DNA of 64,000 nt from Klebsormidium nitens (GCA_000708835.1 DF237441.1:1-64000), one strand, 5' to 3'; positions 55,962 to 64,000 are shown, counted from the first letter of the stretch. The notes: generated by a model from the letters alone, not told the origin. Numbers and translations are program-made.

Positions 55962-58900
55962 TTAAACAACGACTCTACCCCCTCTTCTGCCGCGCGGCTT
56001 GTAATCGATGGCAGCCGCCGCAATCTCATGCTCCGCGCGCTCCCCCAGCAAGGCCTGGTCCTCGAGACGCTTCCGTTTCCACTCCCGTTCAGCCTCTGTC
56101 AGCATTAAGCCGTTGTCGGTTTCCGAGGTGTCCCTCTCCTCCCGCCGCCGCCACGCAATCCGGGCCAGCTGCTCGCTCGTGCCGTGATCGGTCGCCTCTA
56201 GTGGGGCACCATTGGCGACCTGCAACGCCTGCATGTGCAGCGAACGACCGTGGTCCTGCAAGCCAGGGAAGGCCGTCCGGATGACCGCCTCGGCGAAGAA
56301 CACCTCCTCGGCAGGGGTGTTGAACTGGACGACGACGGGCAGGATTCGGGACACCATGGAGGCCTTCCAGAGGTTGTTTCGGGCGAGGAACTTTTCCGCC
56401 AGCTCCGGATTGTAGTTGGTCTGGAGCATGACCAACTCGTCCGGAATCTCGAAGTCCTGCCAGAAACCCCGCCCCATGTCTCCCAGCCCCCGCACTGGCA
56501 CGGGACCGTACGTGTCCCGGCCCTCCTTTTTGTTGAGGAAGCGCGGCACCATCTCGTCGTCGTCCGCTTCCAAATCCACCGACTTGGCGTCATCTTCGGA
56601 CTCGTAGTCCGATTCCAACCTTTCCCCGTTGTCCCCTTCCCCGTCGTCCGCCTCCTCCTCCTCCAATGACCCGCTTTTTTGCGCTCTCTTCTCCTTTCTC
56701 CGGCTCGCTTGCGTTTCGCCCGCCTTCCTCGGAGTCCCTCTGCTCAGCCGCCAGTGGGTCGGCGCCATTCAGCGTGTCGGCCAAGATCCGGATGAAGCTT
56801 CTCCTGAGCTCCAGATGAGCGCCTCCGGTAGCCTCGCACTGGTACACCGCCCTTTGCATAGTCTCTTCCAACGGCAGCTCCTTCCAAAGTGCCGTCCGCA
56901 CGACCACCTTGGCGAGCTCGTCGGGCGTTCTGCCGGTCATAAACATCTCCCCAGGCTGGACGACTAGCTGCGGAGCAGCTGCGGCCACCGTGATCGCCCC
57001 ACTCGAGCTTGAAGCCGCGCCTGCCGCGGGCCCTCCATCTAGGAGCGCACCTTCGTACCCAATCGCCCGAAGCAGGTTGGGGTCCGGCCGCGCGCCCGTC
57101 GGCCTTTCCCGCCAATGGAAGACCTCCCTTCAGCTCGAACCCATCAAACTCCGGCTCCCCTTTCTCCCGGTCCCTTCCGCCCAGCCGCTTTGCATCCCGG
57201 GTGAAGCGGTACAGTGTTAGAACGTGGGAGTTGGTGCCGGTGGCGTACTTCAGCTGCGTTGCCGAATAGTACGGCCCTAACCCCTCTAACACAAACACCG
57301 GGAGCTTTCTCAGCATGGCTACCACCGTCTCCACCTCCATCTCTTGATGCGCCGCTTCACTGAGCCCCTCATTGGACCACTGCTTCCTCTGCGTCTTCCA
57401 GTCGATGACGTGCAAGGGTGGGGAGACCCACTCCTCTTGTTCCATCCGGGCATTGAGGACGTACAGAATTGCGTCTTCGAGGAACGCAGTCCGCCCCTCC
57501 TGCCCCGCTCCCCATCTCGAATCCGCTGGCGCCCCGTTCAAAACCCCCTGCCCCCGTCTCGCCGTCCCCTTCAAGAACAGCTCGTGGATGTTTCTTAGCC
57601 GAAGCCTCCACCTGTCCCCGTCGTCCTCACCTCCAGCTGCGGCAAGGAAGTAAACGCAGATTTCAGAATCGTGAACCCGCACGCATCATTTCAAACAAAC
57701 GAGCTAAAGAGTCGAAATTTGATATGCCCCGCTTTGGCTAGGGTACCCGCAATATGGGCCTGAAACGTCAATATTCTTGTCATGTTGGAAACATGCGATT
57801 CGGGAGAACGAGGTGCTGCAGAATACTACCATCACGCCATTGCTTTTACAACATGTTAAAGACTTTGAGTGTTGGCTGATGCTTGGACCGGTAGAACGCC
57901 ATCTTCCAACGTTTCAGACACTTGCATCCAATGGGCATACGTTGAAAGGTACCTGAGCGGATGGCCTTTCGCCGCGGGCCTTCCAAAAAGTCAACCATAA
58001 CGCCGATGGCCACTCGGCCATCCGGGGTTAGCTCTCCCTGCCACGCCCGCCGCCACGCGCTGTACAGCTGGCTGTATACTGAGCTGCCGTCCAGATCCGC
58101 TGCATTAGCGGCTAGCGTCGCGGAGACGTCGATCTTGACATTGAAGAACTCGGGGGGAGGCGCAGAATCTACAAAGTTACCAAACAGAATCGTTTTATGT
58201 ATATGATGCTCGCGGCATTACTCATTGCTACATTTGGATATGGCATAAGCAGCGCGACTCGGAGAAGGAGTTCTGTTCGAGATAAAGCACATGAATGAAA
58301 CGAAAGGATGCCGTTAGATGCGTCAATAATATCAATATTGTTTAAGTATTTAATGCAGTTGCCTGTCTTGCTTGCCGGGTCTTTTATGATCCTACTGCAA
58401 ATGTGCCGACAAAGAAAGTCTGCCCATGCACAACACAATACAAAAACGTGTATGACAAGATCGGGACAAGATCGTTCTTTTCGAAACCAGCAGTTTAACA
58501 AACTAATACTCAATCGAAACAAACAAAGCAGACGCACCACTAACTCCCCCAGCACCACCAGTTTCTTTCTCGTGAGTGTCGCCACCTAGGCCCCGGCCAC
58601 CCGTCACCACATCTTCCGCCTTAGCGGGCCCCGCCCCTTTTGTAGACCCCACTCGTGCACCTAATCTACTCGGATTCCCCTTGCCCCGCGCCATATTTGC
58701 CCCTTGCCCGAGATGCCACCACCTATTTGCCTTGCTTCCCCCGCTTGCTTCCCTCTCTCTTCTGCCGCCTTGAACGTTTCAGCCCCGCCTTGCGCTGCCT
58801 CTTGAGCGGCAGCGCGCTCCCGTTCCCTTGCCTCTCTCTCCTCCCGCTCGATCTGCTTCGGCGGCTTCCACCTTTCCGCGCCAGCAGGCAGATCAGGGTA

Positions 58901-61696
58901 GTACTCCCTCTTGTCGTAGGAGCGCCCGTGCTCCACCTCCCTCTGCAAAGGCATTCTGTTGTTGTCGTCGTCGCGGATCACGCGGATCCGGCGCGCTAGG
59001 TCCAAGTCCTTCGCCTGGAGGGTCCTGCGCTTGCCGTGCGCAACGCAGAAGATGGCGTCCCCAAAGAGGCCCACGGTAAAGTCTTGGCTCGCCTCCAAAA
59101 GTGCGTCTAGAGCGGACGACTGCCACCTGCAAGATTTTCAAAACAGATTAGGATGCTCGAGATTTGGATATCCCTCCGCCCGAACGATTTCCAAATGCAC
59201 ATTCTGTTACGCACTTTTGGAACTGGACCGTCCGATTGGAAGGACAGGTNNNNNNNNNNNNNNNNNNNNNNNNNNNNNNNNNNNNNNNNNNNNNNNNNNN
59301 NNNNNNNNNNNNNNNNNNNNNNNNNNNNNNNNNNNNNNNNNNNNNNNNNNNNNNNNNNNNNNNNNNNNNNNNNNNNNNNNNNNNNNNNNNNNNNNNNNNN
59401 NNNNNNNNNNNNNNNNNNNNNNNNNNNNNNNNNNNNNNNNNNNNNNNNNNNNNNNNNNNNNNNNNNNNNNNNNNNNNNNNNNNNNNNNNNNNNNNNNNNN
59501 NNNNNNNNNNNNNNNNNNNNNNNNNNNNNNNNNNNNNNNNNNNNNNNNNNNNNNNNNNNNNNNNNNNNNNNNNNNNNNNNNNNNNNNNNNNNNNNNNNNN
59601 NNNNNNNNNNNNNNNNNNNNNNNNNNNNNNNNNNNNNNNNNNNNNNNNNNNNNNNNNNNNNNNNNNNNNNNNNNNNNNNNNNNNNNNNNNNNNNNNNNTT
59701 CTGTTACGCACTTTTGGAACTGGACCGTCCGATTGGAAGGACAGGTGTAGAAGCACATATGATTCCGGGAGTTGGTTATTTCTACCAGTGCAAAGAGACC
59801 CGCATACTTTTGCTGCGCAAATCATGCTAGTTGAGTTGCCGCTTCCTTCGGGAGATTGTTGCCCACATGATCAGAATGCTTGCATTTGCAACTTTGTTTA
59901 CCTGCCAGCTCAACGACAATGTGGGCAGCTCATTTCAAACACCAGATACCACAAATTCCTGCCCAAGTTGCTCGTTCCGACATGCTTGAAGCTCCACATC
60001 ACAGCCCAACGTAGTAATATCGAACAATAGACGTCAACTACTCGATTTCAACTGAGATGCTAACCTGCGGCCGTAGCTCTTTCCCCTCTTGTTCCACTCC
60101 GTGTCGCACAGCTCACGCACGAGCCGACCGAACGAGAGCCTGGGACGACAGGTTCCGTGCTCTTTTGGTACTTCCGGATCTCCCTGAGGGCTAGGGTGCC
60201 TGGCCTGTACCGATGCGGCTTCTTTGGATCACGCTTGGAGGTGGGAGCTGGACCTTCTGGCGCCTTGCGCTTGTTGCCTGCAAAACAAACAAAGTGCTTA
60301 TACTTTGCAACAAACCAATTGTATTAGGTTTACACAAGAGCCCACCATACTAAACTGAGACCATACACTAGTAGTTTAAACAAACAACCTAGCTGGAGCA
60401 GCTATGAAACCATTGCCTTGACCACCAATTGGCAGCTGGACCAAAAACGCCGCAAGTACCGTGTTTTAGGGACCCTCCGCTTGCAAACTAGGCCCAAGAC
60501 GCTCATGAAGTGATCAAATTGAGCTCAACCTTTACAGCCCATATACCACAAACTGCTTCTGCACTCTGTTTGGGAAACAACCAGCTCGTCAAGAATGCTC
60601 AAACCAAGTGCACTGAGCTGACAAAAAGATCCTCATGATCTTGCAGCTCAGCAAACATGCAGGTGCTTTGAACAAACCCATCATAGAACAAAGAAGGAGG
60701 TGGTCGTATTTTGGAATAAACCATATGCATTCCGATCAACATGAGCGCCCACCACTTTAAAACGAGAGTATGCACCATGTTCTGAATAAACTCCTAGCTG
60801 AAGTTGCTAAAGTACCAAAGCTTTGACGACAACTTGACAGCTGGTCTAAGAGGCGCCGAAGCATCATGTTCAAAGACAACCGGCGTGCATCTATCCCTAG
60901 GACGCTCATGAACCAGTAACATTTGAGCTCACATCTACAGCCCATTTACCATCAACCGCTCATGCAACCTGTTTGGGATACACTGAACCCGCTAGCTAGG
61001 ATGTTGTAACCAAGCGCATTGAGCTGACAAAGCGAGGCCTAGCAAATTCAAAAGCCAATACCTGCTGCCGCCTTCTTTGCCTCTGTCTCCCGTGCTGGTA
61101 GGCTTCTTGGTGCCTTGCTCTGGAACTTGTTCTTGCCCTTATCCCCTGCTTGCTGGCTGGCTCCTTCTGCTGCCTTCCCCTTGCTGTTTCCCCCAGTGGT
61201 GGCACTGCCGGGAATCCTTGGAGCACCGCTGCACCAGGCCTCAGCCTTCCCGTTGCCCCGAGCTTGGAAAAGGACTTTCTGTTAGCGCCCTTTTTCATTT
61301 GAGGCCCGGGGCAGCTTTGCTCGCTGCTTCGAATGCCGCTAGTGCGGCCGCCTGCCCCTTGGCGTGCTTCTCTGCCTTTCTAGCCTGCGCCGCTTTGTAA
61401 GCCGCGTGTTCTTCTTTGGTGACGTCGTCTGCAAGTGCAATCTGCTGCGCAAAAGTCAAGGGCTCTTGCTCCTCCTCTCCGGTGACTTCCGTAACTTCTT
61501 CAACATTCTGCAAGGGGATTGACATAAGAAGAGGTCCCTTTTCCAAGGGCGATCTCTTGCTATATGCGGCTGCCTCCAAATCCTCCGCTTCCTGCTGATT
61601 TAGATTTGCTTGCTCCGACAGAATGTTTGGATTCTCTAGCCCATTGACCTCTTCGTCTGGAATGTCATCGCTTGAAGACCGGACAACTGCTCTCAT
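55962..61696 (-). pseudogene. Giant histone H3/CENH3-fold gene, copy A (~1,100 aa when reconstructed; several frameshifts)
   Basis: Exons 61696-61062, 60277-60065, 59126-58538, 58168-57953 and 57636-55962, all GT-AG with matching phases 1, 2, 1, 1. H3 fold: [24 protein letters not shown]...[11 protein letters not shown]...RWQSSALDALLEASQDFTVGLFGDAIFCVAHGKRRTLQAKDLDLARRIR. Frame breaks near 61290, 60143, 58700, 57125 and 56664. Confidence 0.8.
59250..59698. other. Assembly gap (449 N) with an identical 48-bp sequence on both sides
   Basis: 59202-59249 equals 59699-59746 (TTCTGTTACGCACTTTTGGAACTGGACCGTCCGATTGGAAGGACAGGT). Confidence 0.95.
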
Positions 61697-62185
61697 TATC
61701 AAGCGCAGTGAAAGCAACGCCAATGTATGTTCGCGGCTGTTTTGAGCGCCTTCCAACTTTGAACTTCAGAAACCTACCATGCAAGCAACCTGAATTTTGG
61801 CCGTGCATGGGCCGAGTTTGAAAGTCAATTCAAGACACTTCGTAATTTGCGTTCGATTTCGATAGCTTGACAGGCTGCAGCGTAGGTGTAAAACCCACTA
61901 TTCGTCGACCTATGACCGGTTTCGATGTTGTGAGCCTTGAGTCGACCTATATAGGCTGCAGGAGCTATATCGTCGAAAATGAAGTAAAAGAGCGGGAGCG
62001 TGACATTCGCCAAGCGTGTGAGACCCTAAGCAAACCCTAATTTAATCGAACAATCCATTGCAAGCTAGTTCGTCAAAAGTCTGCCTTGAAACATAATTTT
62101 TCGTGGTCTCTTTCGCGGAGGGCGCCGCCTCCGATCAGCCGCAAGCTTCCAACGCTTCCTTCATTTGCAAAGGCCGTGCATCAGC
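61697..62185. promoter_or_regulatory. Candidate bidirectional promoter between the two H3-fold genes
   Basis: ~490 bp between divergent ATGs. Central palindrome CCTATATAGG (61946-55), telo-box AAACCCTAA (62032-40), E2F-like TTTCGCGG (62111-18). Confidence 0.45.
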
Positions 62186-64000
62186 ATGCGACCAAAATTG
62201 CAACGGGGCCACCAAGCGGAGAAGGTGGCCGCAGCAGAGGATGAGGTTGGTAACTTGGAGAACCCGGGGGGAGCGCAAGTCCCGAGGGGGTCCGAACCTA
62301 CAATCGACATACTAGAGCTAGACGAGTTTGGCCTTCATGCTAACTGGGGACTAGAGGGTTATCTGTCATACGTGGAAACCCTTGCTACGCAAAACAAGTG
62401 GTCCCCAGAGAAAAAAACGGAGGCGGAAGCTCATTTTCTAGCACAATTTGCAGAGCTTCGAAGCGGGGAGCAATCTACTCCGCCAGAGACCATGCAGACA
62501 GAGGAACGGGCTCCGGAAGAAGTCCGAAAGGAGCGGCGCATTATGAGCTCAGAAGAATAACGGGCTCAGATTGACGACATTGCACGGAACAATGCTCCAT
62601 TTGAGAACCCCCTCGGTCACTGAGAACCTGAGGAAGACGATCCTCAGAAAAGCGGACACTTGAATGCGGCGGGGGAAGACGATCCCGATGCGCCCACCGA
62701 ATCGGAGCTGCAAGCCGAAATGACGTTCAAGCAACATGCACGAGGGGAGGAAGCGCCCGCAGAGGATGAAGAGGAAGAAGAAGGGGGGGAGCTGCAGTCG
62801 ATGTTGGGAGATCCTGGTCGGGATATGGACCCAGCAGAGCAGCACAGGAGGCACAAGGCAGCAGTAGCAAGCTTTCGAAAGACCTCGAGAGAACTTGTGA
62901 CGGCCGGCAAGCAGCCTCGAAAGAAGCCGCAAAGCAAAGCAACAGGTCGAAAGCCATCAAGCGTCTGGGCCGTGGTGGGGGCCTGGTGGGGGGCAAGAAG
63001 CCGGTGGCTGAGGCGGTGGCGCTTGCAGGCAAGCCGGAGGCAGCAGGGGCCACGGGGCAGAAAAGCTCAGGGGGTGCCCAAAAAAAGAAAGTAGCACCGA
63101 CGGGCGCCATTGGGAAGCCGGCAGCTGGGGAGGGGAAGCAAAAGCTCGCGATGGGAGGCAGTGGAAAGGCGGTGGTTGGAGGCAACCGGAAAACATTGGC
63201 GGCGCTCAGGCGCTGGGAGTCCGCGAAGAGGCCGCGGCGGTACAAGCCGGGCACCGTAGCGCTCAGAGAAATTAGGAAGTACCAGAAGAGCACGGACAAC
63301 CTTATTCCACGAAGCACATTCGCCCGGATCGTGAAGCGCCTGTGCAACACGTGAGTCGAAACGAGAAGACCTCATGTAAGTTTTTTGATGATGTGGGCGG
63401 TCGTTTTTTTGGACTGAAAAGCTTTCTCCATGAAGTTTAATGGTTTTGAAAGCATGCGGTCTGCTTTGCTCTGGGCCCAATGATCCGATCCGGCAGCCAG
63501 CTTTCCGAAAGTGATTACTCGGACAAGACTGCGGCCGGGCCATCTCCGAAAGTAGGCGGATCATTGTGATTTTGGATTTCATGAGTGAGAACCTCTGCAA
63601 CACTCGAGCCGTGGACCGGCTATTTTCCGAAAGCGGGTACATTGGCGGGGTTCCGGACATCATGCGGGAGATGAACTGGTCAATGTTCGAGCTTTGCACT
63701 GATGTCTTGATGACTATCTTGCAGGTGGCAGGCGTCGGCGTTGGGGGCCTTGTTGGAGGCAAGTCAGGACTTTGTCGTAGGGCTGTTTGGTGACGCGATC
63801 TTCTGCCAGGCGCACGGCNNNNNNNNNNNNNNNNNNNNTTCTGCCAGGCACACGGAAACCGGAAGACTCTGATGAAAAAAGAACCGCACCTGGCGAAACG
63901 GAATCGAGGCATCCGTAATGAGGACAACAAACTCCCACTGCAAGAGGCTGTAGAGCACGTCGTGGACCGACGTGATACCAGGGTCTATGACCCGGACCCA
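62186..64000 (+). pseudogene. Giant histone H3/CENH3-fold gene, copy B (runs off the window end)
   Basis: Acidic N-terminal region with in-frame TAA (62558) and TGA (62621), then GKQPRK and a frameshift before ~62990. [42 protein letters not shown]; donor at 63351 or 63376; acceptor at 63724. Then WQASALGALLEASQDFVVGLFGDAIFCQAHG and, after the N gap, NRKTLMKKEPHLAKRNRGIRNEDNKLPLQEAVEH. Confidence 0.85.
63819..63838. other. 20-N gap whose flanks overlap imperfectly
   Basis: Left TTCTGCCAGGCGCACGGC versus right TTCTGCCAGGCACACGGA (16/18; both differences are synonymous third positions). Confidence 0.9.

Follow-up and report, generated by a model that had tools for sequence, protein, structure and literature searches.

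A probable decayed copy of a three-gene cluster of long histone H3-like genes on a Klebsormidium nitens scaffold

Introduction

Variants of histone H3 usually deviate from H3 in a few residues or in the N-terminal tail. The centromeric variant CenH3 (CENP-A) is characterized by the absence of Q68, the exchange of F84 for W (or Y) and the exchange of T107 for A, C or S, diagnostics which reportedly go back to Malik and Henikoff and, in 2010, to Dubin et al. (the latter as cited in PMC5579357). The short C-terminal tail of CENP-A acts as a docking site. Here, a locus of Klebsormidium nitens (NIES-2285), a close algal relative of land plants, is described, in which two H3-fold genes are arranged head to head, copy A on the minus strand (61696-58661) and copy B on the plus strand from 62186. 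The analyzed DNA comprises the 64,000 nucleotides of DF237441.1:1-64000, which are referred to as the window and whose positions are used throughout. The window probably holds a decayed copy of a three-gene 'long H3' cluster, which would be specific to Klebsormidium and was copied as a block to at least four scaffolds.

Compared to canonical H3 (H3.1/H3.3), the members of this family are considerably longer (approximately 410 to 625 amino acids (aa) versus 136 aa). They carry 130 to 330 additional N-terminal residues, lack the tail motifs ARTK and ARKS, and continue after the usual C-terminus with a module of approximately 45 aa and a charged tail. With CenH3 they share the three diagnostic positions, a longer loop 1 and a long, fast-evolving N-terminal region. 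Two further systems are comparable in gene organization, namely the divergent histone gene pairs (H3-H4 and H2A-H2B) and the cargo of Plavaka/EnSpm transposons. Plavaka elements in a red alga were found to carry chromatin-modifying accessory genes (methylase/SET and ParB/oxygenase), not histones (10.1101/2025.02.11.637652). In a literature search, no description of long H3 variants in Klebsormidium or of histone-carrying Plavaka elements was found.

Results and Discussion

The three-gene unit and its copies

All searches were run exon by exon. The flank of the window could be read for a further 6.5 kb, up to the end of the scaffold at 70517 (locus L010, DF237441.1 52186-70517). Where L010 and the window overlap, both sequences are identical. 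Comparison with the reading frames of relatives revealed that neither A nor B is open in the window. In the flank, a third H3-like gene, C, was identified on the minus strand (scaffold 67451-70005; L010:15266-17820), in tail-to-tail orientation to B. C comprises an acidic N-terminal open reading frame (ORF) of its own (304 aa) as well as the C-terminal module of the family, and it is broken by a stop codon and a frameshift. C was found at the matching position and in the same orientation in the loci L003 and L006.

The block 58282-64000 recurs on DF237790.1 with a nucleotide identity of 84-92%, including introns and spacer, and with the same order of A, B and C. It is also present on DF238231.1 and DF237929.1. 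The pair described in the original prediction is part of a three-gene unit, which lies in a block of at least 10 kb on at least four K. nitens scaffolds (the scaffold of the window included, 78-93% identity). The A, B, C order is kept on three of them, and the total refers to the clusters examined. Each of the three other K. nitens copies has lesions in the parts covered. In all four clusters at least one of the genes covered is damaged, and intact exons were found only in relatives and in exon 1 of locus L005 (DF238231.1). The synonymous divergence (dS) among the K. nitens copies ranges between 0.04 and 0.17, compared to 0.18-0.21 between these and the environmental contigs. As the K. nitens copies have diverged less from one another than from the environmental contigs, the amplification is recent.

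Metagenome contigs with intact exons are 80-90% identical to K. nitens. The exons of A are open in L002, L008, L011 and P0218-P0220. The last exon of B is open in L001 and also in L007, where the first 200 codons were examined. In L011, a metagenome contig, exon 1 of A and the start of B are both intact and are located head to head at a distance of 476 bases, so that the arrangement is preserved with intact reading frames on both sides. More distant members with 40-47% identity (P0031, P0220) were found in ENA and Logan assemblies, whereas a scan of JGI metagenomes with the last-exon alignment revealed no relative.

The main rival explanation is that the cluster is the cargo of a large DNA transposon of the Plavaka/CACTA type, in which case the copies on these scaffolds would represent dead insertions, with histones that serve the element. 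The repetition of a largely decayed block on several scaffolds, with intact versions in relatives, is the usual pattern of transposon-borne genes, and a multi-copy, mostly degenerate block of several chromatin-related genes resembles Plavaka/EnSpm cargo. Furthermore, the other cluster copies are located on short, repeat-rich scaffolds adjoining long terminal repeat (LTR) retroelements, and one C-type fragment adjoins a Helitron Rep/PIF1 gene. However, no transposase domain was detected in the 104 open frames of at least 110 aa in window positions 1-58585 or in the flanking ORFs tested. Likewise, no inverted terminal repeats bounding the cluster or other element ends were found on this scaffold, with the right boundary lying beyond the scaffold end at 70517. 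The other domains of the window are of host type (Kelch, methyltransferase, RRM), and a transposon has inserted into the cluster, which is not itself visibly part of an element. A cargo origin is regarded as a real but minor possibility. On the left, the homology breaks off at 58282, at the position of a probable LTR-element insertion in L003.

Two side observations concern single copies of the family. On DF238231.1, the end of B exon 1 is duplicated locally in tandem (L005:7936-8682). The odd public protein model P0006 (516 aa), which contains a repeat of the tail and of the first half of the H3 fold, is due to this duplication. On DF237391.1 (L009:2955-9263), a C-type last-exon fragment is located approximately 1 kb from a gene for a Helitron protein of 1,612 aa (Helitron_like_N and PIF1 helicase). 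An H3N exon (see Table 1) was not found beside the fragment on this scaffold. The fragment may be a Helitron-captured gene fragment, and its position would then show another route of dispersal.

Histone fold and C-terminal extension

The Pfam family Histone (PF00125; curated cut-off 26.4 bits) matches both halves of the fold in both copies, with 44.1 bits for B exon 1, 54.3 bits for the last exon of A and 28.6 bits for the H3N exon of A. The protein P0007 reached 44.7 bits. For the alignment to canonical H3, the first 136 aa of P0075 were used as reference. In this alignment, Q68 is replaced by A in B and by G in the A-type, F84 by W and T107 by A, and the positions are A or G, W and A, respectively, in all of the A-, B- and C-types. 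Loop 1 is extended by two residues in the B-type and by seven residues in the A-type.

Apart from these differences, the fold is colinear with canonical H3 (alpha-N, alpha-1, loop 1, alpha-2, loop 2, alpha-3) and contains one nearly identical stretch of 21 residues. The residues R69, R83, C110, H113, R116, T118, D123, L126 and I130 are kept, and the fold ends at the same position (RIRG). H3 chains of the PDB match the last exon of A with E ~1e-10 over residues 83-135, up to this RIRG, where the extension starts. The extension (LPLQ..VEHG..Y.P..RWK..QIERE) is common to the three paralog types. The residues P-L-Q, V-E-H-G, Y, P, R-W-K and Q-I-x-R-E-x-R-E were found to be invariant across A, B and C. 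In both copies and all relatives, the intron acceptor tcttgcag/G TGG CAG splits the codon of R83 in phase 2, directly before W84. The divergent H3-fold pair, the changes at Q68, F84 and T107, the phase-2 intron immediately before the WQ of the fold and the common C-terminal extension, all of which had been proposed from the window, were confirmed by these comparisons.

The substitutions raise the question of a centromeric function. The genes could be the Klebsormidium CenH3 and its paralogs, copied in repeat-rich pericentromeric DNA. The loss of Q68, F84W, T107A, the longer loop 1 and the long N-terminal regions agree with this, and CenH3 typically combines a fast-evolving N-terminal region with a constrained fold. 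On the other hand, helix alpha-N is H3-like, and together with the K36-K56 stretch it is almost identical to canonical H3. The PDB sequence matches slightly favour canonical H3 over a CENP-A homologue. The family consists of three paralog types, maintained as a repeated cluster with many dead copies. A conserved C-terminal module of 45 aa is not known in CenH3. The C-terminal addition comprises tens to approximately 190 residues and not a few, so that the putative docking element of the family would resemble the C-terminal tail of CENP-A in idea only. No Klebsormidium CenpA entry was found in the supplement of a kinetochore survey (PMC5579357). Taken together, the assignment to CenH3 is unlikely.

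Lesions in the reading frames

Exon 1 of B forms one open frame of approximately 396 codons in the environmental contig L007 and is also open in K. nitens DF238231.1 (L005). In the window, the frame is interrupted by the stop codons TAA (62558-62560) and TGA (62621-62623), where the relatives have Y and S, respectively. In addition, frameshifts of +11 bases near 62978-62988 and +1 base near 63352-63356 were detected relative to the relatives, and the final base of the exon is changed from G to T. A rescue of the stop codons by an alternative genetic code or by small introns was considered and rejected, since the relatives read Y and S within a continuous frame of 396 codons.

The last exon of B reaches to approximately 66780 on the scaffold and is interrupted 89 bases past the end of the window by a 2.25-kb element (64089-66336). 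The insert is a non-autonomous DNA transposon with the terminal repeats CACAGGCTAG...CTAGCCTGTG. Its terminal inverted repeats are 18 bases long (CACAGGCTAGTTATATGC...), GTTGGCCAAC is repeated subterminally, and two bases of the target (GC) are duplicated. A gap of 1,403 N lies within the element. The empty site is present in L001, L007 and L003, and no further copies of the terminal repeat were found in the window or in the other loci. For the reading of this exon and for the analysis of substitution rates, the exon was assembled by a script from its coordinates, with the assembly gap collapsed and the transposon omitted. In this form, B is colinear with its relatives for approximately 190 codons beyond 64000 and stops in the same exon.

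In copy A, at least four frameshifts were identified. Exon 1 has two uncompensated +2 indels compared to the intact 212-aa reading of L005, and these are not located in simple homopolymer runs. In the H3N exon, the frame is shifted by the loss of one base from a run of C, compared to L002 and L003. Near the end of the last exon, one additional base in a run of G displaces the stop codon approximately 20 codons past the family end GK(K/Q)GK. Judging from their reading frames, A, B and C on DF237441.1 are all pseudogenes. It is highly improbable that errors of sequencing or assembly account for the stops and frameshifts and that A and B work at this locus: although the scaffold has artefactual gaps with duplicated flanks, two of the A indels lie in C and G runs and the last exon of A has a ratio of nonsynonymous to synonymous divergence (dN/dS) of 0.24-0.28 versus its relatives, the two substitution stops of B, the 11-base insertion and the transposon with its 2-base duplication are not errors of the homopolymer type, the two +2 indels of A lie outside such runs, and the extension of B diverges neutrally (see below).

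The public annotation of the locus is wrong, as the 'histone H3' models of 877 aa (A) and 242 aa (B) are patched pseudogenes. The 877-aa model fuses A to unrelated ORFs, and P0071 is the annotated product of copy B. An A protein of approximately 1,100 aa was also considered and rejected, because L002, L008 and L003 all keep the stop that follows GK(K/Q)GK and the ORFs downstream of it have no counterpart. The 'giant' form of the original prediction is thereby reduced to lengths of approximately 625 aa (B-type) and 410 aa (A-type). The rightward extension of the window revealed no counterpart in B of the supposed downstream exons of A (55965-57682). The two ORFs at 55962-57682 on the minus strand, 268 and 312 aa in length, contain no Pfam domain and occur neither in any other cluster copy nor in the region downstream of B. 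They probably belong to a separate gene.

Selection on the family

Within types, the C-terminal half of the fold has a dN/dS of 0.05-0.17, whereas dS between types ranges from 0.6 to saturation. For the extension, dS between paralog types was approximately 1.1 to beyond correction and dN was 0.37-0.56. Within types, its dN/dS was found to be 0.16-0.24 (A-type), 0.10 (C-type) and 0.46 (environmental B pair). For the B of the window versus its relatives, values of 1.0-1.3 were obtained, which is neutral. In the A-type, the dN/dS was 0.40 for exon 1 (p = 3e-5) and 0.10-0.28 for the last exon (Fisher p <= 4e-4). According to these values, the family is under selection. Selection on the A-type is clear (dN/dS 0.1-0.4). 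The B-type is near neutral, with a weak constraint on the protein, and the case for it rests on the open frames in relatives and on the conservation between types.

The conservation of the extension between the two copies had been taken as a sign of selection and of an old family of the long form. This view, with an old family instead of a chance read-through, is supported by the conservation among types with saturated dS and by the constraint on the A- and C-types, whereas the extension of the B in the window diverges neutrally from its relatives. For the dN/dS of the extension between paralogs, which had been suggested as a measure, the synonymous sites are saturated.

Several points weigh against a decayed long H3 cluster that was copied as a block. 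Among the four K. nitens clusters examined, no fully intact A, B or C was found, and neither end of the copied block was located. The dN/dS of B exon 1 (0.77) and of the B last exon (0.56-0.73) is not significantly below 1 in either case. Some of the A indels are located in homopolymer runs and could be sequencing errors. The single Logan contig examined retains the intron. Finally, an AlphaFold2 prediction for the last exon of A (alignment of 10 rows) reached a predicted local distance difference test score (pLDDT) of 49.7 and was not used; the model suggests only a long charged helix at residues 90-132.

Possible role of the intact proteins

According to the intact exons in relatives, an intact member of the long H3 cluster starts with a lineage-specific acidic N-terminal region of 130-330 aa, followed by a K/A/G-rich basic tail without canonical H3 modification motifs and an H3 fold in which CenH3-type substitutions and an extended loop 1 are found. 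The conserved module of approximately 45 aa follows the usual H3 C-terminus, and a charged low-complexity tail forms the end. In the cluster, A faces left, B right and C, beyond the window, left, and the block of at least 10 kb was copied within K. nitens. Intact members may pair with H4 and replace H3 in nucleosomes. The residues of the H3-H3' bundle and of the DNA-contact loops (C110, H113, R116, T118, D123, L126, I130, R83 and R69) are kept. The C-terminal module would then project from the particle and could be a docking site for a partner.

Tentatively, and with rather low confidence, the trio may be regarded as a self-contained chromatin kit spread on a mobile element, which would wrap the DNA of the element without host silencing marks and provide a private docking module. 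The combination of hundreds of N-terminal residues with a selected post-fold module, in a three-gene cluster with a shared promoter, would be a new design of a specialised nucleosome. The CenH3 hallmarks and the amplification followed by decay bear on the origin of centromeric or selfish chromatin proteins.

The spacer between A and B

The spacer of 489 bases (476 in L011) is 88% identical between the window and L011, compared to 85% and 77% for the flanking exons, and its core (61947-62046) is 96-100% identical. The higher conservation of the spacer compared to the flanking exons fits a shared promoter, and the spacer is probably a bidirectional promoter. Within the core, two TATA-like elements form a near-palindrome (CGACCTATATAGG / GAGCTATATCGTCG), and the telomere-repeat-like motif ACCCTAA occurs twice.

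The head-to-head layout and the short spacer, better conserved than the coding sequence on either side, are similar to divergent histone pairs. In contrast to those pairs, both partners are H3-like and not the two histones of one dimer, both have spliceosomal introns, and a third H3-like gene is located tail to tail. The predicted resemblance to histone gene pairs, with the difference that both partners are H3-like, agrees with the PF00125 matches and the conserved short spacer.

N-terminal regions and the donor site of B

Both copies had been proposed to start with the same motif, MR...(D/E)EV(NG/GN)LENP. The comparison of A and B was not significant, neither pairwise (BLASTP E = 0.065; 6/11 identities) nor by profiles (hhalign E = 0.073). 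The motif is not kept in relatives, in which the region reads EEEENGLEDP or is absent (A-type) or reads EDVVQVGDSENP (B-type), and the common start was not retained. Using the first 240 residues of the B-type, a phmmer search against 1.84 billion representatives revealed no relative outside the family, and a search of the ESM Atlas with the B-type N-terminal region gave no usable match.

The conserved donor of the family is CTCAG/GTAAGT (the slash marks the exon end). In the window, the donor of B is CTCAT/GTAAGT with the exon end at 63375. The donor AC/GTGAGT of the original prediction (exon end 63350) was found to be made by a 1-base insertion and had to be replaced by the family donor located 25 bases downstream. 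With this donor, the intact loop 1 in relatives reads CNTYSKxEDLR-W.

Assembly gaps

The flanks of the gap at 63819-63838 repeat 18 bases with two mismatches, so that FCQAHG is translated twice. Three independent relatives (L001, L007 and L003) cross the site without additional sequence. After collapse of the overlap, B can be read across the gap in frame (GDAIFCQAHGNRKTL; GDAIFCQAHGNRKTLMKK), and this reading is colinear with copy A and matches it residue by residue. The gap is an overlap artefact. The same applies to the gap at 59250-59698, since L002, L003 and L008 are continuous at this site.

Feature coordinates and other observations

The features of the pair are listed in Table 1.

Table 1. 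Coordinates of gene parts, spacer and assembly gaps at the A-B locus in the window
Feature	Position	Strand	Description
Copy A exon 1	61062..61696	-	ATG 61696-61694; acidic N-terminal region, then K/A/G-rich tail; donor CAG/GTATTG
Copy A H3N exon	60065..60277	-	Helix alpha-N, helix alpha-1, long loop 1
Copy A last exon	58661..59126	-	W84 to fold end, conserved C-terminal module, charged tail; stop TAG 58663-58661
Assembly gap in last intron of A	59250..59698		449 N; approximately 48 bases of flank duplicated on each side
A-B intergenic spacer	61697..62185		489 bases between both start codons
Copy B exon 1	62186..63375	+	396 codons in intact relatives; acidic N-terminal region, basic tail, helix alpha-N, helix alpha-1, loop 1
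Copy B intron	63376..63724	+	Phase 2; from the conserved donor of the family to the acceptor tcttgcag
Copy B last exon (start only)	63725..64000	+	W84 to fold end, first part of extension
Assembly gap in last exon of B	63819..63838		20 N; 18 bases of flank duplicated

In window positions 1-55000, the ORFs with Pfam matches encode Kelch repeats, a methyltransferase with similarity to tRNA U5-methyltransferase and an RRM protein. No reverse-transcriptase domain was found in the ORFs of at least 110 aa in this region. The first intron of A (60301-61031) contains two diverged tandem copies of a unit of approximately 325 bases (61031-60707 and 60625-60301), which are 69% identical. Near 60390-60398, several of the cluster copies break or have insertions.

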